Below are positions 1 through 31,276 of a stretch of 64,000 nt of DNA, one piece after another. This stretch comes from Diplonema japonicum. Lineage: Eukaryota > Protista > Euglenozoa: Diplonemea. The stretch covers positions 310,001-374,000 of the forward strand of contig OZ025686.1 in NCBI GenBank assembly GCA_964019335.1, read 5' to 3'. Positions within the stretch are counted from its first letter, which is position 1, and every line of letters begins with the position of its first letter. Position numbers and translations under genes: made by a program. The notes below the pieces were generated by a model. It saw only the letters and a list, made by a program, of their open reading frames with translations. It had not been told where the DNA came from and searched no databases.

Positions 1-481
1 CCTCGATGCCACCGGTGGTGGAGAACGCCCAGCAGCTGTGTGGGATGGTGTGTTATTCATCTGGTTATTCGTCTGTCACATACCTCCCGCACTGTGCTTG
101 GTTCTTCACGTGGGTCACGGCACCCTTGGACCTCCAGTCCACCTCGGTGGGTGCACGCAGGCCGGTGCCGTTCCAGGTCGGAGCATCGATCTGTCTGACT
201 TGAAGGTTGTGGTAGACTTTGAACTCAGCGGGGGTCAGGTCGCTGAAGACATTCACCCCGAAGGAGGCACCCATGGTCTGCTCCGCCTCGTAGTCCACAC
301 CTTGCAGAAGGTTCGCGAGGAAGACCTGGTATCTCCTCTCCTCTTCGACAATGGACGCGTACCTCTTGTTGTAGTCTTGCTTGAACACGCTGAACATGGA
401 GCGGGCGTTGCCGCGGATGTACTCCTTGCTCAGACCCTGCACGGTCCCTGCAAGGAGCGCCATGACGATGAGCGACTTCAT
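1..481 (-). CDS. Papain-family (C1A, cathepsin L-like) cysteine protease, 5' part; runs off window start
   Basis: Signal peptide, I29 propeptide (ERFNIN-like, GVNVFSDLT), VDWRSKGAVTHVKNQAQCG. Removing GT-AG intron 36-83 (48 nt) restores the catalytic motif QCGSCWAFSTTGGIE. Confidence 0.93.
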
Positions 482-553
482 GTTAGTTAATGTAGTGTCT
501 GTGGGGGATCGGGAAACATGCTGGAAGGGGACAACACAACAACAAAAAACTGT

Positions 554-1110
554 TTAAAGAAAAGTTTTCGCCCCGCTCCCCGTCGAGTTCACCATAGATA
601 AGGAGTAAAGAAAAGGGGAGGAGGTAAGAGAGGGACTGTTTGGTGGCCAGCGCCACCCCATCAAGATGGTAAAAGTTTCAGTAAACACAAATGTGTTTAC
701 TTCCCCACGGATGCGCCTGGCGATGTTGAGGTCAAGGTGGTTGAGGGTCTGTTTCTTCCTGTGGATCTGCATCATGACAGCTGCCTGGAAAAGCCCGACC
801 ATGTAGCTCTCCGTCGCTTCCTGCATTGCTTCGAGGGCAGAGGGCTTAAAGGAAAGGCCAGTCTTGTAGTTATTCATTGTCTCCCTCACCAGCCTCTGGA
901 AAGGTGCCTTCTGCAGCAGCAGCTTCGAGGTTTTCTGCAGCTTGAAGATCTCACGAAGGGCAACAGTTCCTGGCCTCCACCTCCTTTTCCCTTCGCTGTC
1001 ATCCTTCTTGCTTTTCTTGGACTTTTTCTCTTTCTTGGCCTTCTTCGACTTATTCGTCACGTCTCCTTGGGAGGCTTCCCACCGGTAGACTTGAGGCTAA
1101 AACGGGGCAT
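554..1110 (-). CDS. Divergent histone H3 variant (H3V-like), with an apparent 1-nt frameshift in the tail
   Basis: Histone fold RRWRPGTVALREI...APFQRLVRE...SALEAMQEATESY...ARRIRGE. ATG at 1110 gives MPRFSLKSTGGKPP in a different frame. The 3' end after RGE is uncertain (possible intron). Confidence 0.8.
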
Positions 1111-1849
1111 GTGTACCAGAAACTTTCTGGAGGGGGGAAAAAATGGATTAACGTATTTTATAAAAAAAAGTAATGGAGAAAACAAGTACAGAAAAAAAAA
1201 AAAAAAAAAAAAAAAACAAAAAACAAACAAACAAAACGAGGGTGGTCGAAATTTTCTCTTGTCATCTTTCTTTTTTTTCTTTTTTCGAACACCCCTCCCT
1301 ACCCTTGTCCCTCCATAGTCACATCCTGTGTATTACATACAAACCACACACAAGTTCTTTACTGTTCTTCAGAAAAAAAAGGGGGGAGGGGGCATAAGAG
1401 GGAAAGGTAGAGGGAAAGGGGGAGGGTACAATACAAACAACTAAGAGAGACCTGAATCCCGCTCAACAAAGAACCCCAAAAGAAAATATACGGGTCCCTA
1501 TATGTCCCCCTTTTTATAAAAGAAAAAGAAAAAGAAAACAAAAATGAGAAAGGGGGGGGGTAAAAAAAATGGTAACAACAACTTTTTTCTTTTTTTCTTC
1601 GAGTGAGCAAAATTCCTTTTTTTTTTTTTTTTTTGCTTCAGTTCGCATCTCAGTACTGGGGAACAAACCTTCTTGTAGGACTGTGGGAAAAAGAAAAAAA
1701 TTTCCCCCCTAGATTTTTCTACCCTCATACCTAACACTCCTTGGCTGCCCAAGGGGTGAGTAAGCCGAAGTTGGGGAAGCCAGACTGGTAGTGGAGTAAG
1801 GGTTAACCTACAGATTTTTTTTTCTCCAAAAAGTCAAAATTTATTCCCT

Positions 1850-3049
1850 TTAACAAACCAATGTCTCGTAGTAAGCCTTTGGCTTCGACGCTGTAGAAGG
1901 GTACTGAGTAAGGGCGGCTGTAGTGGATAAGGGGCTCATGGGTGAAGCACCACGTGTGGGTTGCGAAGGGGCACGAGAGGAGCTGTGTTGGGGGGACTGG
2001 GACCTGAGAATTGACTGAAGAGCAGTGCGAGCCTGCTGGAGTTTGACTTCATTCTCAAAACCGGCCCCTGCAGAAGAAACGATTGCATCCTGCGCGCGTT
2101 GGAGCTTCTGCTGCAGCATCTGGACCTCAGCGTCCCTCTCAGCAAGCATGGTCTGCAGCTTGAAGATGGTCCCCTGTGCCTCGTTCTGCCCCCCAGCAGG
2201 GAATGATGTGGGCCTGCCATCCTTAGTTTGCAGCGCCTGGATCTTCCCCTCTGCGTCGTGTAGCTTTGCCTGAAGCTCTTTAATAACCGCCCTGTCCTGG
2301 CTTGAACCCTTCTCCGACACGTTCATCGACGACCTGGACGCACGGCGCTGCACGTTTGCTCTCGCTTTGGTCTCCGCCTCCTCTGCCCGCTTCGTCAGCC
2401 TCTTCACCTCCGCCTCCAAGGACTTTATCCTCTCAGATCTCTTCGCCAGGTCCTGCGTCAGCATCTTGATCTTCACCTCCCCCGACCCAGAACTCATGAG
2501 ACGCTGAAGAGACGCGTTCTGTTGCTCCAGCGAGTGCACCTTCGCCCTCGCGTCCGCCAGCTCGGTCTCGACACTGCGTGCCTCGGGGGGGGTGGTAGGG
2601 GGTGCCACAGGGGTTGCGGCCCTATCCGAGTGGACAGACTCTGCCATTTCCGGAACTGGCTCACGGGGCTCTGATGGGGCAAGGGATGCTGCACTTGCCC
2701 TTGCGGTACCTTGGCTCCTGCCGCTGAGGTGGCTGCCCTGCCTTGTCATTTCTTCAGCGGGAGATGACACTTCAGGGATGGGTGTCCCCGCAGCCGCAGC
2801 TGCTGCTGCCGCGGCGCTCTCTGTGACGGACTCCTTCAAGCTAGCCCTGCTCCCCTGCTTCGACAGACCAGGGCCTTGAGATGCCGTGGAGCCCTGCCTT
2901 GACCTTGCCTTCACACTGTCGGGGGACGTAATAGGTGTCTTGGGAGGAAGGGCAGACGCTGTAGAGCCCTGCCTGGACCTGGCAGGCGTACCTGGGGTGG
3001 GCACAGGGGTGGTCGCTGTGGCAGCTGGTGAGTTGAGATTCTCGCTCAT
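1850..3049 (-). CDS. Ser/Pro-rich and coiled-coil protein, unknown function
   Basis: 399-aa ATG ORF. ARSRQGSTAS occurs twice; C-terminal half is heptad-rich. Confidence 0.75.
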   Translation of the reverse strand: MSENLNSPAATATTPVPTPGTPARSRQGSTASALPPKTPITSPDSVKARSRQGSTASQGPGLSKQGSRASLKESVTESAAAAAAAAAGTPIPEVSSPAEEMTRQGSHLSGRSQGTARASAASLAPSEPREPVPEMAESVHSDRAATPVAPPTTPPEARSVETELADARAKVHSLEQQNASLQRLMSSGSGEVKIKMLTQDLAKRSERIKSLEAEVKRLTKRAEEAETKARANVQRRASRSSMNVSEKGSSQDRAVIKELQAKLHDAEGKIQALQTKDGRPTSFPAGGQNEAQGTIFKLQTMLAERDAEVQMLQQKLQRAQDAIVSSAGAGFENEVKLQQARTALQSILRSQSPQHSSSRAPSQPTRGASPMSPLSTTAALTQYPSTASKPKAYYETLVC

Positions 3050-3197
3050 TGTTCGTTTGTTTGTTTAGCTTCCCTGAGCTGCGTGATGTGCTGCACAACC
3101 CTTTGTGCCAGATACTTAAAATACTAATGTAGTGTAAGCACCCATGGGCCTTGTTTTTTTTTTTTTTTTTTTCCTTTCCCTTTTGTAAAAGGGTAGC

Positions 3198-3464
3198 CTA
3201 CAGGTTGGGGTAAGTGGGGTTCCCAGGGAGGACTAGCTGCCTGGGGTTCTTGTGGTTCAAAGTCGCGTTGCGGTCCTGTGTGTTGTTGTGGTTCTTCCCC
3301 CCTTCCCCCCCAAGAAAACAAAAACACACCTCAATCTCGTAGTTAAACTTTGCAGTCCCAACAGCAGCACCAGAGCCGTACCTGGCGTGGCTCCCCCAGT
3401 TCCCACCGTGCTGCTGTGTGCCGTCGAACACACTCAGGGGCTTCATCAGGCCGTTGGCGGGCAT
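3198..3464 (-). CDS. Small (~70 aa) unknown protein, copy 1
   Basis: ATG ORF with putative in-frame intron 3276-3329 (GTGTGT...CACAG). Identical coding copy at 22467-22733 with a different stop codon (TAG vs TGA). Confidence 0.7.
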   Translation of the reverse strand: MPANGLMKPLSVFDGTQQHGGNWGSHARYGSGAAVGTAKFNYEIEVCFCFLGGEGGKNHNNTQDRNATLNHKNPRQLVLPGNPTYPNL

Positions 3465-3719
3465 TTTGGTTTTCTTTTGGGGTTTTTTTTAATAGTGTAT
3501 CTACTTAATGCATTCATCTTCTTTACAAAAAAAAAGACAAGAAAACTGGCAAACGTAAGGGGGCGAGGCGGGGAGGGGGGGGGGGGGGGGGGTAACAAAC
3601 CAAAAAAAAAAAAAAAAACAGACTCAACTGATAGTTCGTCCCCCTTTTTTTGAATTTATTTTTTTTTTGTTGTTCATGTTCTCACGCACAGGGATGTTTT
3701 TATCGCTTCCGTTTCGTTC

Positions 3720-4997
3720 TCACAGTTCGACCGTTTTGGACGCAGCTGTGTTGCGCTCTATCTCTTGGACGGACTCCATGGCCATGTCGGCGGTCTGCTG
3801 CAGGTTCCCGATGTTGGCCCACACAGACGAAAGGTGCCGTTTCTGTTCCAACTCCGCGGGGCTCGGTTTGGAGTACGAATCCAACATCTCTACAAGACTC
3901 GACTTCCTCTCCCGAAAGGCCGCATTCTGCACCAAATAATCATTCGGGTGCGGGTTAGGCGTTGCAGTGAAATCCCTCTCCGCCGTTTCAAGCTGCTGGA
4001 AAAAGCTCGCGGTCGACTGCATGAGCTCGGGACCCGACAGTTTCTTGAACATCGCGTCGTTCTGAGCATATTTCTTCCTGACAGCCATAAGAGCCAAGAT
4101 CACACCCATGAAGACGACAAATACCACACCACAGCCTATAAGCAACATAAGAGTCAACAAATCATTATCACTCTTGCTACCATTACACACTGGCATTACA
4201 CCCACAGTGATGTTAACAGAAGGAGACAGACAAGAACAGATAAAATCGCCTTTCACGGTGAGACGAGGGTCACGGCACTCAGCCTTGACTCCACAGGGCG
4301 CGAGGCGACACTCATCTTCACCTACGAACTCAGTACAGTTGACGTTCACCTCATCGTCATAGAACGACATAATAAAGGAAGTTGTGAGGTCCAGTGAGTA
4401 ATCGGTGTATGTGTTGATCTCACGGGGAGCGGTTACTACAGAAGAGTTTAATGATGGTAGAGGTGAGCTTTCTGATGGGTTGCAGGTGTCGTTAAGCCAG
4501 GTCGCGATGTCACGGGAAGTACCTAGGTTCTCGATCACTGTTAGAAATTCAGAGTTTGGTGAAAATTGTGTAATGGTCACCCGTAAGTTGGAGCTTGGTG
4601 TTGCGGTGAGAACCAGTGGGGGTACAGGGATGTCAGGCATTATGTCGGCGCATGTTTTTCCTATCCACACTCCGCGGCCCATGACACTGTCGGTGCCTTT
4701 TAACGGGAGGTACACAGTGTCGTTGGCGGGGATGACACCTGCGGCGCCGCTTTGTCCCCCGAATTCGAAGCCTTCTGGGTTGTTGAACCTGCATGGGAGC
4801 TTGCTTACTATCATCTCGCCCTCCCACCCGACTACCCGCACCTCGTTTTCCTCTCCGGTCAGCTGGAATTTTATCGTCCCGAGGTCTTCAAACACCGCCT
4901 TGCTGTTCCATGGGCCCACGCTTTGACAGCGGCCGCTGTTCGCGAACAGCAGAAAAACTAACACGATTGGGATCGCTGTGCGATTCATGGTTGGCAT
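3720..4997 (-). CDS. Type I membrane protein with EGF-like domain
   Basis: Signal peptide, EGF-like DECRLAPCGVKAEC...FICSC...C, TM helix LLTLMLLIGCGVVFVVFMGVILALMAV followed by RKK. Confidence 0.8.
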   Translation of the reverse strand: MPTMNRTAIPIVLVFLLFANSGRCQSVGPWNSKAVFEDLGTIKFQLTGEENEVRVVGWEGEMIVSKLPCRFNNPEGFEFGGQSGAAGVIPANDTVYLPLKGTDSVMGRGVWIGKTCADIMPDIPVPPLVLTATPSSNLRVTITQFSPNSEFLTVIENLGTSRDIATWLNDTCNPSESSPLPSLNSSVVTAPREINTYTDYSLDLTTSFIMSFYDDEVNVNCTEFVGEDECRLAPCGVKAECRDPRLTVKGDFICSCLSPSVNITVGVMPVCNGSKSDNDLLTLMLLIGCGVVFVVFMGVILALMAVRKKYAQNDAMFKKLSGPELMQSTASFFQQLETAERDFTATPNPHPNDYLVQNAAFRERKSSLVEMLDSYSKPSPAELEQKRHLSSVWANIGNLQQTADMAMESVQEIERNTAASKTVEL

Positions 4998-5247
4998 TGC
5001 ATTTTTTTCCCCCTTTCTTTTTTTTTTTCCCCCCCCTTATCCTTGGAGGAAAACTAGGAGGGAAACAAAAGGGGGAAACAAAAAAAAAGGGGGTAAAACT
5101 GTTTTAAAAAAACAAAAACAAAAACAAAAAATGCACTGTAACTTTTCCTTTGCGGGATTTTTTTTCTTTTTTTTTTTTTTTTTTTGGAAAAAAAAAAAAA
5201 AAAAAAAAAGACAAAAAACAAAAACAAAACCCCCCGTCCAAAAATCT

Positions 5248-6313
5248 TTAAACAGCGGACCTTGCAGTGTGAGCCGTCGCGGGACGTTGTTTTTTCCTCC
5301 CTGCAGTGGAGGCGGACACATAAGACGAAGCAGGTGGCGTGGGGACGGGCTCGGCCTCTGTTTCCCGCACCTTTTCCGCAGCCTCGTGACATCTCTTGGC
5401 GAGCATCCCCGCGTAGTTGTTGTTATAATTTTGAAAGTTTACAGTGGGCTGGTACGAAGCCGCTGTCTGTGACATCATCGTCCCCTTGAGATGCCCATCG
5501 AGCAGATTTCCCCAAGGGGCACGACACCCAGTGCCTCGACTAGAGAACACACGCGGAGACGCCACATTAGGAATAGGCTTGGCTGACCCGAAAAATGCAT
5601 CATACGTGGTCCCCTTATTGTTTGCAGATTGAAGCGTTTTCGGCTTTACAACAGGGCGACCGCATGTTGTAGAGGCCATTGCTCGGCTGCCTACATCAGA
5701 GTCTTCAACAACGTGGGGTAGGCTACTTGATACTAAGGATGCCTTGGGGGTGGGTTGACCTTTGGAGGATTTTTTTTTGACGCCCATCGATTTGTTGGCT
5801 ACTCCTATATTACGTAGATGGATGTGCTCTGCGGTGTTGTGGATCCCCTCTACCGTATACGTTGTTTTGTAGTCGGAGATCCCATTGAACAACCTTAGTG
5901 GTTTTATCTTGCCAAAGATTTCGCGGAACATCTGCCTTTCGGTCTCGCCAGACATTGCCAGCCACAGCGCCACCAGTTTCCTGTACTCCTTTGCGACGTG
6001 CTCGCCGCCGTGTTTTTTCATTATGACCCTTGCCTTTAGCATGTTTTCTTCGTCCGCCTTCTTCATCACTGTCCTGTTCTCGGGCAGCATCACGGCGCGC
6101 ACCACGGTTTTAAACTTCGCTCTCTGCTGTGCAGTGGAGTAGTTGTTGTACCAGTTTTCTACGGACACACGATGTTCTTCGGCGATGAACCGTTTGTATT
6201 TTCCCTTTTTTTTTGTATATTGTCATATATATTCATACCTGTAGCAAGTGGTAAGTGCTGGTAGGGGCACCAACTTCGACTGTCACGTTCAAGTGGTTTA
6301 TCTGGTCGGCCAT
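5248..6313 (-). CDS. Hypothetical protein (2 exons)
   Basis: Exon 1 6313-6239 (MADQINH...LLQ) joins the 5248-6204 ORF in frame after removal of a 34-nt GTATG...AAG intron (6205-6238). Confidence 0.65.
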
Positions 6314-6657
6314 TGCCCCCTCCCGTCCTTTTTTTTTTTTTGAATTTGTTTTCCAAAACGGGGCAGGGGGGCGGGTGTTTTCTTTTTTTTTTTTTTCTTT
6401 AAGAGCCCCAAAAAAATCGTTTTTTTTTTTAACACATGTGGCAGGATTATATTTGCTTCAGACAATCACCAAAAATCGTCAAAAAAAAAACCCCCCCTGG
6501 AAAAAAAAACACTGCTAACATTCAAACAAGGAAAATGAACACGAAAAAATACACAGGGTAAGGGAGGGGGTCCTACGTTCGATCAAATATCAATACAGAA
6601 ATTTTAAAAAAAAGGGGGGGGGGAAACAACTCTAATCTATCTTTTTATTTTTAACTT

Positions 6658-27157: not shown

Positions 27158-27361
27158 TTTTTTTTTTTTTTTTATATATCCCCGTGTGTAGAAGACTGGG
27201 GTTGAGGATGAGAAACATCATTCGTATTTGCATGAATAACATAGAGAAGGAAATATTTAAAAAAAAAAAGATGTCTTTGAAGGGAACCTGCAGTATGTGA
27301 CAGGATCGCCTAACGACAATCAACTCATCTAGTGTTTGATCCCTTCTGTCGTGGTAGTGCC

Positions 27362-28677
27362 TTAGGCCCGTCGTAGTATCTCATCAGCAGCTTGGGCGTG
27401 AAACCAACTAGCGAGTTGTTGAGGATGCAATGCGTGCGCATTTGTTCCTCTAGGATCGAGTGGGTGACCTTCGGGGATGCGGATTTTCTCGAGGGTTAAG
27501 TATTTCTTGGATACAGCTCCAAAACTGTTCTCCGTGGATGGGGCTGCGGTCCTTCGCAAGCTGGGTGAGTTTACTTCGCCTCTGCCTGAGAATATCGAGT
27601 TTCCCAATTGTGCTGTCCCCCTCAAGAGATGCTTTTCACAAGCTGTAGAGAGCGCTAAGAAAGCGGCGTCTAGATCCCCGGTGTCCTTCAGGGCCCTCAA
27701 TGTTGGGAGAATATCACTGTGCGGTGTACGGTCTCGGGAGTCCTGGAGGGGGACGATCATCCTGGGCAGATAGGTATTGGAGCGAGGGCTCGTGGAATTT
27801 TGGGATATCAATCGAGATTTTAAGTGCGTGGTGGGAGGGGACACCAATGTCGATGGTCTGGCAGTCTCTCAGAGCCATTGACGCCGTTGCGTTCATCAGG
27901 ATGTAGTCTGGCCTGGATTTCGCCGTTGCCGTGACGAAGGAGGGAGGGGTCTGTACCACGTAGGCGTAAGACCTTGTCCGAGGCGTCCGTCCAATGCTGT
28001 GCAAGGGCGTGTGAAAGCACCGGGGAGTCCTGAATGGTAGTATTAAAATCTCCCGTTACGATGACCGGAACGTCCCCCAGTTGCGTAGTTTTCCGTAGTG
28101 TGTCATCTATCAGTGCTTCCCTGTTTCTTTTGGCGTGACTACTGCCGTCGTTAACCTGGCAGTAGAGGGTGATGACGTGTAACCAATCCCGTTTCCCCAA
28201 TGCGACTCTTACGTGAACTCTGCGTGTGTTGGTGCCGTGGTCTTCGAAAAGAGAAGTCTCCTTCTTCGCAGTCAGCCGCTTGTTCACTATAATTCCCACT
28301 CCTCCTCTTTGGGCGACCGAGGGGGACTCTGCATCCTTGGATATCTTTCCCTGTTGCGGGGGTCCCCAGAAGAGACGGTGTTCTTTCAGGAAAGCGTCAC
28401 GTTTTGTTTCTTCGTTCACCATTCACTGACCAGCTTGCGTTAGGGCTGTCTCCTGGAGGCAGATCAGGTCAAATGATTGTAGTTTGATCCTATTCAGATG
28501 GTTCGGGAGGTTCGTGACGTTCACCGAGATAAGAGTGAGCTCCTTCTTGTTCTCCTCTTCGGGTCCAGGATTCGGATGGATGTCACCGTGGGTCATGAGC
28601 CGTTTTCTCGCTTCGCGTGCGATAGATCGTCTCGACCTCTTCAAAATGAGGAAATGTGCCCGTGGAAGGTGGATCAC
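27362..28677 (-). pseudogene. ORF2 remnant: 2A-like peptide plus apurinic-like endonuclease
   Basis: ORF pieces 28423-28677, 27820-28422, 27714-28004 and 27362-27847 are collinear. In-frame TGA after QETALTQAGQ; SRPDYILMN matches the APE xRxDY motif. Confidence 0.8.
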
Positions 28678-28851
28678 TGTTAAGGAGTAGATCAGGAGGT
28701 TGTTCCTGGATGGAGAGCCGAGCCAGTCGCAAGTGAAAGGGGCGAAGGGGATTGGCGTGGCCGAAGAAGTTAGGAGGTCAATGAATGAAAGAATGATGAT
28801 AATGGTAATGGGGAGGGATATGACTGCCCCGCAGAACTTCAGTGCCTCCTG

Positions 28852-30445
28852 TCAGATCTTCTGGTTTTTGGGGCTTGGGGTCGTCTGCGAGTGGGTTTCC
28901 GACTCCCCTCTCTTCCTCGAACTCTCGGCGTTGGCCGCCTCCACTCGTGCTTTTTCGAGTGCCGCCCATGATCTAGGGAACTCCGCCTCCGTCAGCTTCA
29001 CCCTTTGCTGCTTCCCTTTGAAGGTTCTCTCCCTTCTGTCCGGTGCGTCCTCTCGGGTCCAATCCCTGATTACGAGGGAGTGTCGCTTCTCCCCTCGCGC
29101 GATGAGCCTGACCGTAGGGGGGTTGGTTGCACGTATGAGCCATTTCGACGCACTCAACTTGTCCATGTGGTTAATAACCCACCCACAACTTGCCAGGTCG
29201 ACTCTCAAGTCGCACTCGTGTTCGCAGTTCAGACACCCTTCCAGAATGTATTTTTCGCCTGTCTTCTGCACCGGGAGTAGGATGGGGTTGACCCTGGCCA
29301 GGACTTCCTTGCGGTCCGCACCTCTCGGTAGCATGAGGGCTAACCCGATCGGCGTCACGGTGAGGGAGGTGCCCAGCGACGCGGTGGGAACGTCGGCCGC
29401 CCTGATCCCTTTCTTCAGCTGGATGACTTCTAGTCGGTCTCTCGCGAACGCGTGTGTCCAGAAGACACCCTGGTCCCCTGAAGCTGCTAACAGTCTCGTC
29501 GCGTGTTCAGGGTCTACACGTACGAGGGCGGTGGCTGTCTTGTTCTCTGTGGATCGGTCTATCCTGAAGACAGCATTCGGTAAGACCTTGTAGAGTCTCT
29601 CCTTGTCGCGTGCTGCTAGTAGTGCCATCCTTTTAATGGCGTTGCCGTCTGCAGTGCGTTTCCACTGTGCCGCCGAGCAGTGGTCTCTCGCAATCACCGC
29701 CTTGAGTATCGTAGTCCTGTTGATGTCCTCCTTGGGAGGGGCGTCCATGGCATGTGGGAGCACCTCGTTCCCAGTGACCCAGGTTCGAATGATCCCTCTC
29801 GTCGTGGGAGAGTCTGACTCAGTGCCGCCCACGAATGGCTTGGTGCAGATGATTTTGAAATCAAGGTCGAGTGCCTTGAGACGAGAGGCGAGTTGGACCG
29901 GGTCCGAGGGATTGAAGTAGATACCAGCCGTGAGCTGGTCGGGAATCACGTTGTGGATCTGCTGAGCTCCCCAGTGTTGCTGTACCAGTGCTAAGGGGTT
30001 TAACAGGGGCAGGTCTGCTCGTCCAATTGGTGGCCGCCCCGAGGTATGTCTTGGCGCTTCCTCTTGTCTCCTTCCTCGGGGGTGTCCTCTTCGATTGTTG
30101 CTGCTGTAGTGCCGGCTGTCCTTTCGGTTGTTGCTGCTGGCGCTGTTGCCCCTTAGCCTGTTGGTTTTGGTGCTGCTGCTGCTGAAATTGTTGCTGGGGT
30201 TGACCCGTCTGTTGGTATGGCTGAGGAGGTTGTTGCTGAGCAAATGACTGTTGGGGTTGCGGCGGGGGCTGGTATTGTTGCAGAGCTGGCTGTTGTTGCG
30301 GGGCGGGCTGTTTAGGGGAGGCCTGTGCCTTTTCGACCAACTGTAAAATGCAGCTTAGTGTGGTCAGCACCAGGCTCCTGTTGTCCTCGGAGAGGTCGCC
30401 CGCAAGCAGGCTCTGCGCCCTCTGGACCAGATGATGGGGGTCCAT
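28852..30445 (-). pseudogene. ORF1 of retroelement (Gln-rich N-terminus), frameshifted near 30000
   Basis: ATG 30445 MDPHHLVQ..., polyQ/P tract, continuing in the 28852-30243 frame; lies directly upstream of the APE remnant. Confidence 0.65.
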
Positions 30446-30672
30446 GATCGTCGTCGGTGAGGGGGATAAAATAAAACTGTCTTTGTAAAATTCGCACTCT
30501 CGTCTACCAATCACTATAAACTTTCGTACTCCTACTGACAAACTTTTCACTGATATACTGATACTGATACTTTGCTATCACCTCGCTGTGCTCCGTAATA
30601 CTTGCTGCTGATCTTTGATCTATATTTTTTCTTTTCAAACCGCTCTACCTGGTTCCTTTATTGGCACGGTCG

Positions 30673-30714
30673 ATACCAATAAAGTACAGAAACTGTAGCT
30701 TTAGAATCGTTGGT
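30673..30714 (-). ncRNA. Spliced-leader (SL) exon (38 nt) plus GTAT splice donor; partial SL RNA copy
   Basis: Minus strand 30714-30677 reads ACCAACGATTCTAAAGCTACAGTTTCTGTACTTTATTG, then GTAT. It contains the conserved euglenozoan SL 3' half ACAGTTTCTGTACTTTATTG and, from recall, the diplonemid-type (A)ACCAACGATT 5' half. Confidence 0.9.
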
Positions 30715-31276
30715 AAAAAAAGGGAAAACGATGGAAATAAAAGAAGAAAAAAAGTAAAATAATAACGCAACGCCTCCCCCCCCCCTATTTTAATGTTCTT
30801 TCTTTTTAAACCCTCATGGAGGGCTCTCTCCTCTTACCGCTAGATAATTGGGTTAAGGGCAGAGGAGAGATAAACATGAGCTCGTCCGGGAAAAAAAAAT
30901 GTCAACAAATGACCCTCCCATGCGACAAAAAGACCCCCGTTAAATTTCTAAGTAGGAAAGTAGCCCGACACCACTGTGTGCAGAAATGCAGCCCGGGGGT
31001 TGCAAAGCCTGCCACCCTCATGGCAAAACAAGCACCGCAATTGAAAGAACGGCAACAGGCACACCATGTATGTCATCTTCCTATGGTTGCATGCTGCCCC
31101 CCCCCCCCCCCCCCCTTTCTTTTTTTGCTCAAATAATCAAAACAAAAAAGATTTCGTAACTGCCAAAAAAAAAAAGTGGTCATCCGGACGAGCTCATATT
31201 TTTATAAAAAAAAAAACTCAAAGTACAGGACAAGCCCTCGCTTTAAAAAAAACAAAAAGAAACTTTTTTTTTTCAC

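Follow-up and report, generated by a model that had tools for sequence, protein, structure and literature searches.

The spliced-leader exon as the conserved 5' head of a LINE family in Diplonema japonicum, probably acquired by trans-splicing and reverse transcription

The 64-kb stretch of the Diplonema japonicum genome analysed here (contig OZ025686.1, positions 310,001 to 374,000; hereafter the window, to which coordinates refer unless a locus is named) contains at 27270–30714 a copy of a long interspersed nuclear element (LINE) whose first bases are those of the host spliced leader (SL) exon. The element lies, and is read, on the minus strand. With a probability of a little under 60%, the SL was acquired by this LINE family via trans-splicing and reverse transcription, and has since been passed on as a functional 5' module consisting of the SL and a hairpin. 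That the leader came from trans-splicing rather than from a leader RNA gene is almost certain.

At the 5' end of the window copy a T7 tract (30721–30715) stands directly before the SL match, which covers SL bases 2–39 over 38 nt (30714–30677) and has a T at the position expected for A1. The match is followed at once by GTATCGACC, the first letters of which are GTATCG, and the ATG of the first open reading frame (ORF1) is found at 30445–30443, 231 nt past the SL end. An earlier, sequence-only reading of this DNA had described the same arrangement (a T7 tract, 38 nt of SL exon without the first A, GTAT, and about 230 nt before the ATG), and it was fully borne out. The 3' half of the SL (19 nt) occurs once in the window and 0 times in shuffles. 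The match can be called SL because identical exons are present in native SL RNA genes of the same genome. At locus L029 two SL RNA units lie 352 bp apart and adjoin a 5S rRNA gene (102.6 bits); in each unit a conserved block ending ...GGGAGGTTA lies upstream of the complete exon (39 nt), after which come an intron of ~95 nt beginning GTACCCAATCTGATCC, a terminal stem and a T-run. The published sequence 'Euglenozoa 14' is what we take to be the Diplonema SL. The window SL is of the euglenozoan type, with two differences from 'Euglenozoa 14' (PMC3795323).

The SL is a trait of the family and not of this copy. In the 62.5-Mb assembly that was surveyed, all 14 exact occurrences of the first 14 bases in the 5' untranslated region (UTR) are preceded by the SL, as are both of the one-mismatch occurrences. 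The view that the element's own 5' end is formed by the SL thus holds for 16/16 copies keeping these bases, and an SL-less AG|GTATCG source copy, which would have marked the window copy as a simple retrocopy of a trans-spliced RNA, was found in none of the 14 exact and 2 near matches. In the head-bearing copies that were read (13 loci), A2 or C3 is the first base, and a T-run or a short tract rich in T and C precedes it. The exact SL|GTATCG junction is common to lineages A to E, the bodies of which diverge after about nt 58, 66, 86 or 94. Between subfamilies A and B, nt 1–89 of the head are 98.9% identical, whereas the ORFs are 77% identical and nt 90–303 are unalignable. The conserved head therefore amounts to the SL plus ~52 nt. 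In the window copy its post-SL part, delimited by conservation and folding, lies at 30626–30676 and comprises the GTATCGACC start, a CGTG and an anti-SL arm; the remainder of the 5' UTR (30446–30625) is variable and includes the AG sites that stand behind the SL|GTAGAG and SL|TAGGAG heads of other copies.

Both the minimum free energy and the centroid folds of the head contain a 12-bp stem with a 5-nt loop, in which the last eight SL bases and the GTAT pair with GTGCCAATAAAG (arms at 30684–30673 and 30667–30656). An anti-SL stem of 7–10 bp is found in related families, and native SL RNA has a 7-bp equivalent. The fold of the whole head is only modestly better than those of shuffles (z = -1.75), and no compensatory changes backing the head stem were found. 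When the post-SL sequence of the element was compared with the native SL RNA intron, the only common parts were GTA and a CAATAAA motif, the latter pairing with the SL 3' end in both. Homology of the head to the intron was rejected, the alignment score being equalled in 240 of 2000 shuffles, which is not significant.

The genome has 54 scored matches to the element interval of the window, drawn from 757 candidates. One member of the family, L062 on contig 87, is 6,335 bp long and has an intact ORF1 of 530 amino acids and an intact ORF2 of 1,402 amino acids. The latter contains a 2A-like motif, an apurinic/apyrimidinic endonuclease (APE) domain (PF03372, E-value 1.7e-9) and a reverse transcriptase (RT) domain (PF00078, E-value 2.7e-24), and the best PDB matches of the RT are LINE-1 ORF2p and R2. 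Judged by these predicted proteins, the family is an APE-type, two-ORF, non-LTR (long terminal repeat) retrotransposon of ~6.3 kb. The sequence-only reading had likewise called it APE-type, with an ORF1 and a 2A-like peptide, and both PF03372 and GDIHPNPGP are indeed present in the window copy. The predicted 2A-like motif is unusual in having His in place of the consensus Glu; the pattern GD[VI]HPNPGP is kept in all subfamilies and in the distant homologues P0001, P0003 and P0004. ORF1 has no known domain, no match having been found in Pfam, PDB or Atlas. The closest proteins to those of the family are unnamed ORFs from protist transcriptomes, with at most 46% identity, the others being metagenomic; in ORF2, relatives range from 33 to 46% identity, and no ingi or L1Tc protein was among the results of the homologue search.

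The copies have a common 3' end, variable 5' truncation (starting at query positions 1913, 2032, 2191 and others) and no LTRs. They end ...CAAAGACA(T/C)C and then run into a T-run; there is no poly(A). Since a T-run is found at both ends of the element, the target is a sense-strand T-run, with the SL inside the inserted unit. The 6.3-kb element has no T6 run where ~0.25 would be expected, a comparison which is uninformative on T-run avoidance. Copies up to 99–100% identical to the window copy exist, and the 3' module is 99–100% identical over 212 bp at many loci. Several copies have the parts matching query positions up to 3235 and from 3234 onwards ~2.85 kb apart, and other copies carry different internal deletions, many with microhomology. 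Short, T-run-flanked fragments consisting of the tail only are dispersed genome-wide, and in DNA-like sequencing runs the summed word depth of the tail, which is not a copy number, is ~80x that of the ORFs. The last ~42–44 nt of the tail also occur as tiny T-run-flanked insertions (window 27270–27313; L038:~1080–1130; L059).

Six copies in the LINE group have variant heads, and in each the SL is joined at the base that directly follows a canonical AG in the standard sequence. The head is SL|GTAGAGCGG in L033, where an internal AG|GTAGAG was used (AG at nt 66); SL|TAGGAGTAC in L052, with use of AG|TAGGAG (AG at nt 180); and SL|TAACGG in L102, after CTCAG. The other three were joined within the relic itself: L040 and L105 read SL|TTTCTGTAC... 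(TTTCTG...), after CAG, and L072 reads SL|CTACAG..., after AAAG. The post-AG junction expected of a retrocopy of trans-spliced RNA was thus seen for the AG|GTAGAG, AG|TAGGAG and CAG|TTTCTG heads. L033 demonstrates in addition that SL followed by GTA can be a plain product of trans-splicing. Stacked partial relics are present in L040, L105 and L072 and, in another family, in L017, L026, L093, L098 and L101. Duplicated heads (16 or 22 bases) are rare; the 16-mer is duplicated once at most and never stands in three copies. As duplications are single and never twice over, re-spliced copies must seldom reproduce.

SL relics are by no means confined to these LINEs. The 3' half of the SL occurs 232 times in the genome, and relics head several element families, two copies of a family whose leader is a (GAAAA)n repeat, the gene retrocopy L103 and retrocopies of SL RNA. 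All of these relic types start at A2 or C3, which supports a stop of the RT at the modified cap-proximal bases; the suggestion that the loss of SL base 1 fits an RT stop at the cap can accordingly be extended from the window copy to relics in general. In L103 (G000:C91:6975–7135) a short leader separates SL bases 2–39 from an ORF with the start MKFLVYGHKGWIGGQ..., and the sequence looks as though an ordinary cellular gene had given rise to it as a processed retrocopy. The 19 copies of family K (L071, L074, L081–L092) have as their leader a variable (GAAAA)n repeat before the ATG, except for 2 of the 19, which carry the SL instead, joined after an AG of that repeat. An abundant SL-headed family starting GTCGTTCGTGTTCTGCTGG... 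(L008, L012, L070, L073, L078, L099–L101) is clustered near contig ends, with many matches within 2–12 kb, and often lies beside (CAAACCCG)n-like repeats; its SL is joined at several internal positions that lack a preceding AG, and some junctions have 1–4 bases too many or too few. Private changes in SL relics recur at the single CpG, as ACG to ATG or ACA (L014, L076, L107, L001, L070), and may reflect deamination of CpG cytosines in this genome.

The sequencing runs were examined as Logan contigs with word depths. The SL word depth is ~1000x that of a gene in runs X4 and X8 and ~20–30x in X1 and X2, from which we infer that X4 and X8 behave as RNA. In these two runs the LINE ORFs are covered at gene-like depth, and joints of the SL to the 3' tail, SL|TTAGGCGATCC... 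or GTTAGGCG..., are found at high depth. The element site of these joints is not preceded by AG. Such joints occur nowhere in the genome, and there are no genomic SL|TTAGGCG copies that could explain them.

Native SL RNA genes were defined by the junction between promoter and exon, which occurs six times genome-wide at zero mismatches; all six are among the nine exon-intron junctions, and the intron GTACCCAATC... is present in every one. No element fusion or interruption was found at these six genes. They form two pairs, 346–352 bp apart, and two singles, and six genes are few for an organism with clusters of SL-type genes. In run X1 the summed SL word depth, which is not a copy number, is ~245x that of a flanking gene; being close to the 232 assembled copies, it offers no hint of a large SL array missing from the assembly. 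The remaining three exon-intron junctions have no promoter, and we take these matches to be retrocopies of unspliced SL RNA. L004 (G000:C2:149076–152094), the only one of the three that was read, has exon bases 2–39 and most of the intron, with neither promoter nor A1, and continues directly into unrelated, ATG-bearing sequence, in the manner of a template-switch chimera of the U6-L1 kind.

The favoured explanation of these observations runs as follows. RNA of an ancestral element, co-transcribed with a gene cluster, would have been trans-spliced like an mRNA at AG|GTATCG and then reverse-transcribed to its 5' end, the RT stopping at a hypermodified cap-proximal base, which would account for the missing A1. 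From then on head-bearing copies would have been the sources of new ones and would have handed down the SL-plus-hairpin head, the hairpin masking the pseudo-donor SL|GU, and now and then a new round of trans-splicing, at AGs inside the relic or beyond it, would have yielded the rare variant heads. The shared exact junction, the conservation of the head and the rarity of duplications argue that head-bearing copies are the sources and that the head is selected or exchanged as a unit. As to how an exact head is renewed, the likeliest route would be a transcript that begins at, or is processed to, the first base of the relic, resembling the Pr77 head of the trypanosomatid elements L1Tc and ingi; our leading guess, and the most likely one, is that the head sets where transcription begins and that the SL is thereby inherited in cis.

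A stronger form of this proposal is offered tentatively. In it, the LINEs have adopted the SL exon as a cis-encoded, self-transcribed leader, and the ~90-nt head might be an internal promoter or a module defining the 5' end, built from SL bases 2–39 and an SL-RNA-like stem that hides SL|GU. If so, element mRNAs would carry the SL without trans-splicing, a Pr77-like solution constructed from the SL itself, and an SL-based leader would possibly be common to several unrelated element families.

A number of points weigh against the favoured explanation. No ribozyme or other RNA family was found in the head with Rfam, HDV (hepatitis delta virus)-like ribozymes included, and no promoter was detected, the CGTG being merely a 4-mer. 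The founding trans-splicing event is inferred and has not been seen in the form of an AG|GTATCG source copy, and the renewal of the exact head is argued from the analogy with Pr77, not from data. Trans-splicing at an AG cannot regenerate SL|GTATCG from a head-bearing copy, since TG forms the end of the relic. Lineage-specific changes in the SL part are absent from every family seen, and this uniformity is accommodated by a fresh acquisition in each cycle no less well than by inheritance in cis. In most element families with an SL head the SL is followed by GT, for which we have no explanation other than a shared ancestor. Finally, the GTCGTTCG... family, which is abundant and for the most part located close to contig ends, has several internal SL junctions that are not preceded by AG. 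Longer copies show TG, CG or GG before the positions joined to the SL, and junctions with 1–4 extra or missing bases occur too. A second, non-canonical joining process may be at work, for example template switching by the RT with G microhomology.

Among the alternatives, the one that survives best, although it is unlikely, is that promoterless elements acquire the SL afresh in each cycle from read-through or re-spliced RNA. Two routes can be envisaged, namely a change of template in which the RT moves to an authentic SL-bearing RNA, either inside the 38 nt of SL homology or across the 16-nt repeat, and trans-splicing at the TG|G boundary of the relic without an AG. Such renewal would keep the SL part the same as the native SL in every family, which is what is seen if private or CpG changes are set aside, and would give the A2/C3 starts that de novo gene retrocopies also have. 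The non-AG junctions of the GTCGTTCG family are all preceded by G, and the microhomology deletions and the SL RNA chimera show that template jumps of the RT are frequent. It leaves unexplained, however, why conservation is just as strong in the 52 nt that come after the SL; all six variant heads of the LINE group lie at canonical AGs; and switching would have to be very efficient, since exact heads outnumber those with the 16-nt duplication by more than 10:1 (about 13:1 in the DNA).

Improbable, rather than merely unlikely, is a frozen accident, in which a single copying event on a trans-spliced mRNA would have supplied the SL, an inert relic ever since, and the copies of today would all go back to a few masters, lost by now or unassembled. 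SL relics on retrocopies are common both in this genome and in dinoflagellates, and the window copy is itself dead. An inert relic would nevertheless not be expected to show 99% identity in the head against 77% in the ORFs, to stand in identical form on at least five diverged bodies with different breakpoints, or to retain a hairpin in several lineages; and copies with up to 99–100% identity to that of the window speak for activity in the recent past, even though a master is missing.

Residence in, or capture of, an SL RNA gene, with a master copy behind the SL promoter and the dispersed copies as its cDNAs, was the central proposal of the sequence-only reading and is now very improbable: the resemblance of SL|GT to an exon|intron boundary (the native intron also begins GTA), the CAATAAA pairing shared by intron and element, the absence of SL-less copies and the three promoterless, intron-bearing matches showing that unspliced SL RNA is copied by RT here speak for it, and against it stand the six promoter-plus-SL loci, all with the native intron and none with an element fusion, the SL depth in X1, the head-intron similarity that did not exceed that of shuffles, and the finding that every copy seen lies behind a T-run or short T/C-rich tract, with no copy behind an SL promoter. 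The premise that SL+GTA marks the configuration of the gene also fails, the SL|GTAGAG head of L033 being derived from an internal AG.

The window copy itself is a dead relic of ~3.4 kb from which the RT has been deleted. In a BLASTN comparison with the full-length L062, positions 165–3235 of the window copy match 201–3270 and positions 3234–3443 match 6124–6333, so that nt 3271–6123 of the 6,335-bp relative are absent. The idea that this is a near-full-length cDNA has therefore to be given up, 2,853 bp being missing. From its 5' end the insertion consists of the T7 tract (30715–30721), which is the upstream remainder of the T-run target and probably forms a target-site duplication with 27259–27269; SL exon bases 2–39 (30677–30714), without A1 and identical to the native exons of L029; the two parts of the 5' UTR already described; ORF1 (28852–30445), with a Q-rich N-terminus and split here into two frames by a loss of 2 nt near 29994; and an ORF2 remnant (27481–28677) made up of a leader peptide, with the 2A-like motif GDIHPNPGP near its N-terminus (28561–28587), and the APE domain (PF03372, E-value 1.2e-5). 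The remnant has an in-frame TGA at 28425–28423, where L062 has Trp, and frameshifts near 27951 and 27772; these frame breaks, like that in ORF1, were judged against the contigs of other copies. At the deletion junction (27480–27481) the rest of ORF2, including the entire RT domain, is gone, and it is this internal deletion that has left the copy without an RT. Deletion, stop codon and frameshifts together render it dead. The conserved 3' module that follows (27270–27480) comprises the end of ORF2 and the 3' UTR, its last letters being ...CAAAGACATC; position 27270 is the true 3' terminus of the family, common to other copies, and is followed by a T11 tract (27259–27269), the downstream part of the T-run target.

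The ORFs neighbouring the window LINE are all on the minus strand, which places it in the sense orientation within a gene cluster, and at 9/11 loci the longest upstream open frame is co-oriented with the element. Directly upstream of the LINE, at 30872–31201, is a unit of ~330 bp with 18-nt inverted repeats, AAACATGAGCTCGTCCGG / CCGGACGAGCTCATATTT. In DNA-like runs its word depth exceeds that of a single-copy gene several hundredfold, and it looks like a very abundant repeat resembling a miniature inverted-repeat transposable element (MITE).

Where every mRNA of the host needs a trans-spliced, hypermodified leader, a selfish element faces the problem of producing RNA that is full-length, can be translated and has its 5' end fixed. 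It is for its bearing on this problem that the family is of interest, the window copy being an ordinary dead insertion. SL-associated retrotransposons known from trans-splicing organisms are SLACS, CZAR, CRE and NeSL, which possess a restriction-like endonuclease and have a fixed insertion site inside SL RNA genes. The family described here is likewise SL-associated in a trans-splicing organism and differs from them in having an APE (PF03372), a T-run target and no copy in an SL RNA gene. In the literature we found relict SLs (dinoflagellates) and Pr77 (trypanosomatids) and no account of LINEs whose conserved head is the SL.

In dinoflagellates, relict SLs are DNA-encoded SLs on retrocopies that derive from reverse-transcribed, trans-spliced mRNA, and partial relics pile up through re-splicing (PMC6050394, PMC5585692). 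The two features recur here, in L040, L072, L105 and the gene retrocopy L103. The dinoflagellate relics, however, mark sporadic retrogenes and decay, whereas here the SL is the fixed and conserved first module of autonomous LINEs, the exact junction is inherited, and relics stack at most once. U6-L1 and other snRNA-LINE chimeras, products of template switching in which a LINE RT can join a small nuclear RNA to a second template (PMC4476161), are paralleled by L004, where a copy of unspliced SL RNA runs into unrelated sequence; in the LINE heads, by contrast, the junction is at the end of the SL exon, not at the 3' end of SL RNA, and is heritable across subfamilies. The relics of this genome also form a natural record of where RT stops on cap-4 RNA (A2 or C3), of the use of AG sites and of the frequency of RT template jumps.

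A close likeness is to L1Tc and ingi, which are also euglenozoan APE-type LINEs in polycistronic clusters with an NPGP 2A-like motif before the APE, 2A-like sequences in this position being known from ingi, L1Tc and animal LINEs (PMC3708506). In both cases a short 5' head is conserved far beyond the rest of the element. In the ingi/L1Tc clade the 5' end bears a hallmark of 77–79 nt, Pr77. The L1Tc head, a conserved sequence of 77 nt, combines an HDV-like ribozyme with an internal Pol II promoter and is bound by TBP and SNAP50, transcription factors of the SL gene (PMC8190864, PMC1874656). Compared by description, the present head has only the CGTG 4-mer in common with the downstream promoter element (DPE) described for Pr77, and no ribozyme was detected in it with Rfam. 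The family differs further in possessing two ORFs rather than one, in ending ...GACATC inside a T-run without poly(A), and in the H that replaces the consensus E of the 2A-like motif. In addition, L1Tc transcripts lack the SL, whereas the head here is the host SL exon with an anti-SL hairpin. If the trypanosomatid answer to the demand for a defined 5' end is Pr77, as promoter plus ribozyme, the Diplonema family points to a second one, in which the leader is carried in the DNA, the exact junction is kept and the pseudo-donor is folded into a hairpin.

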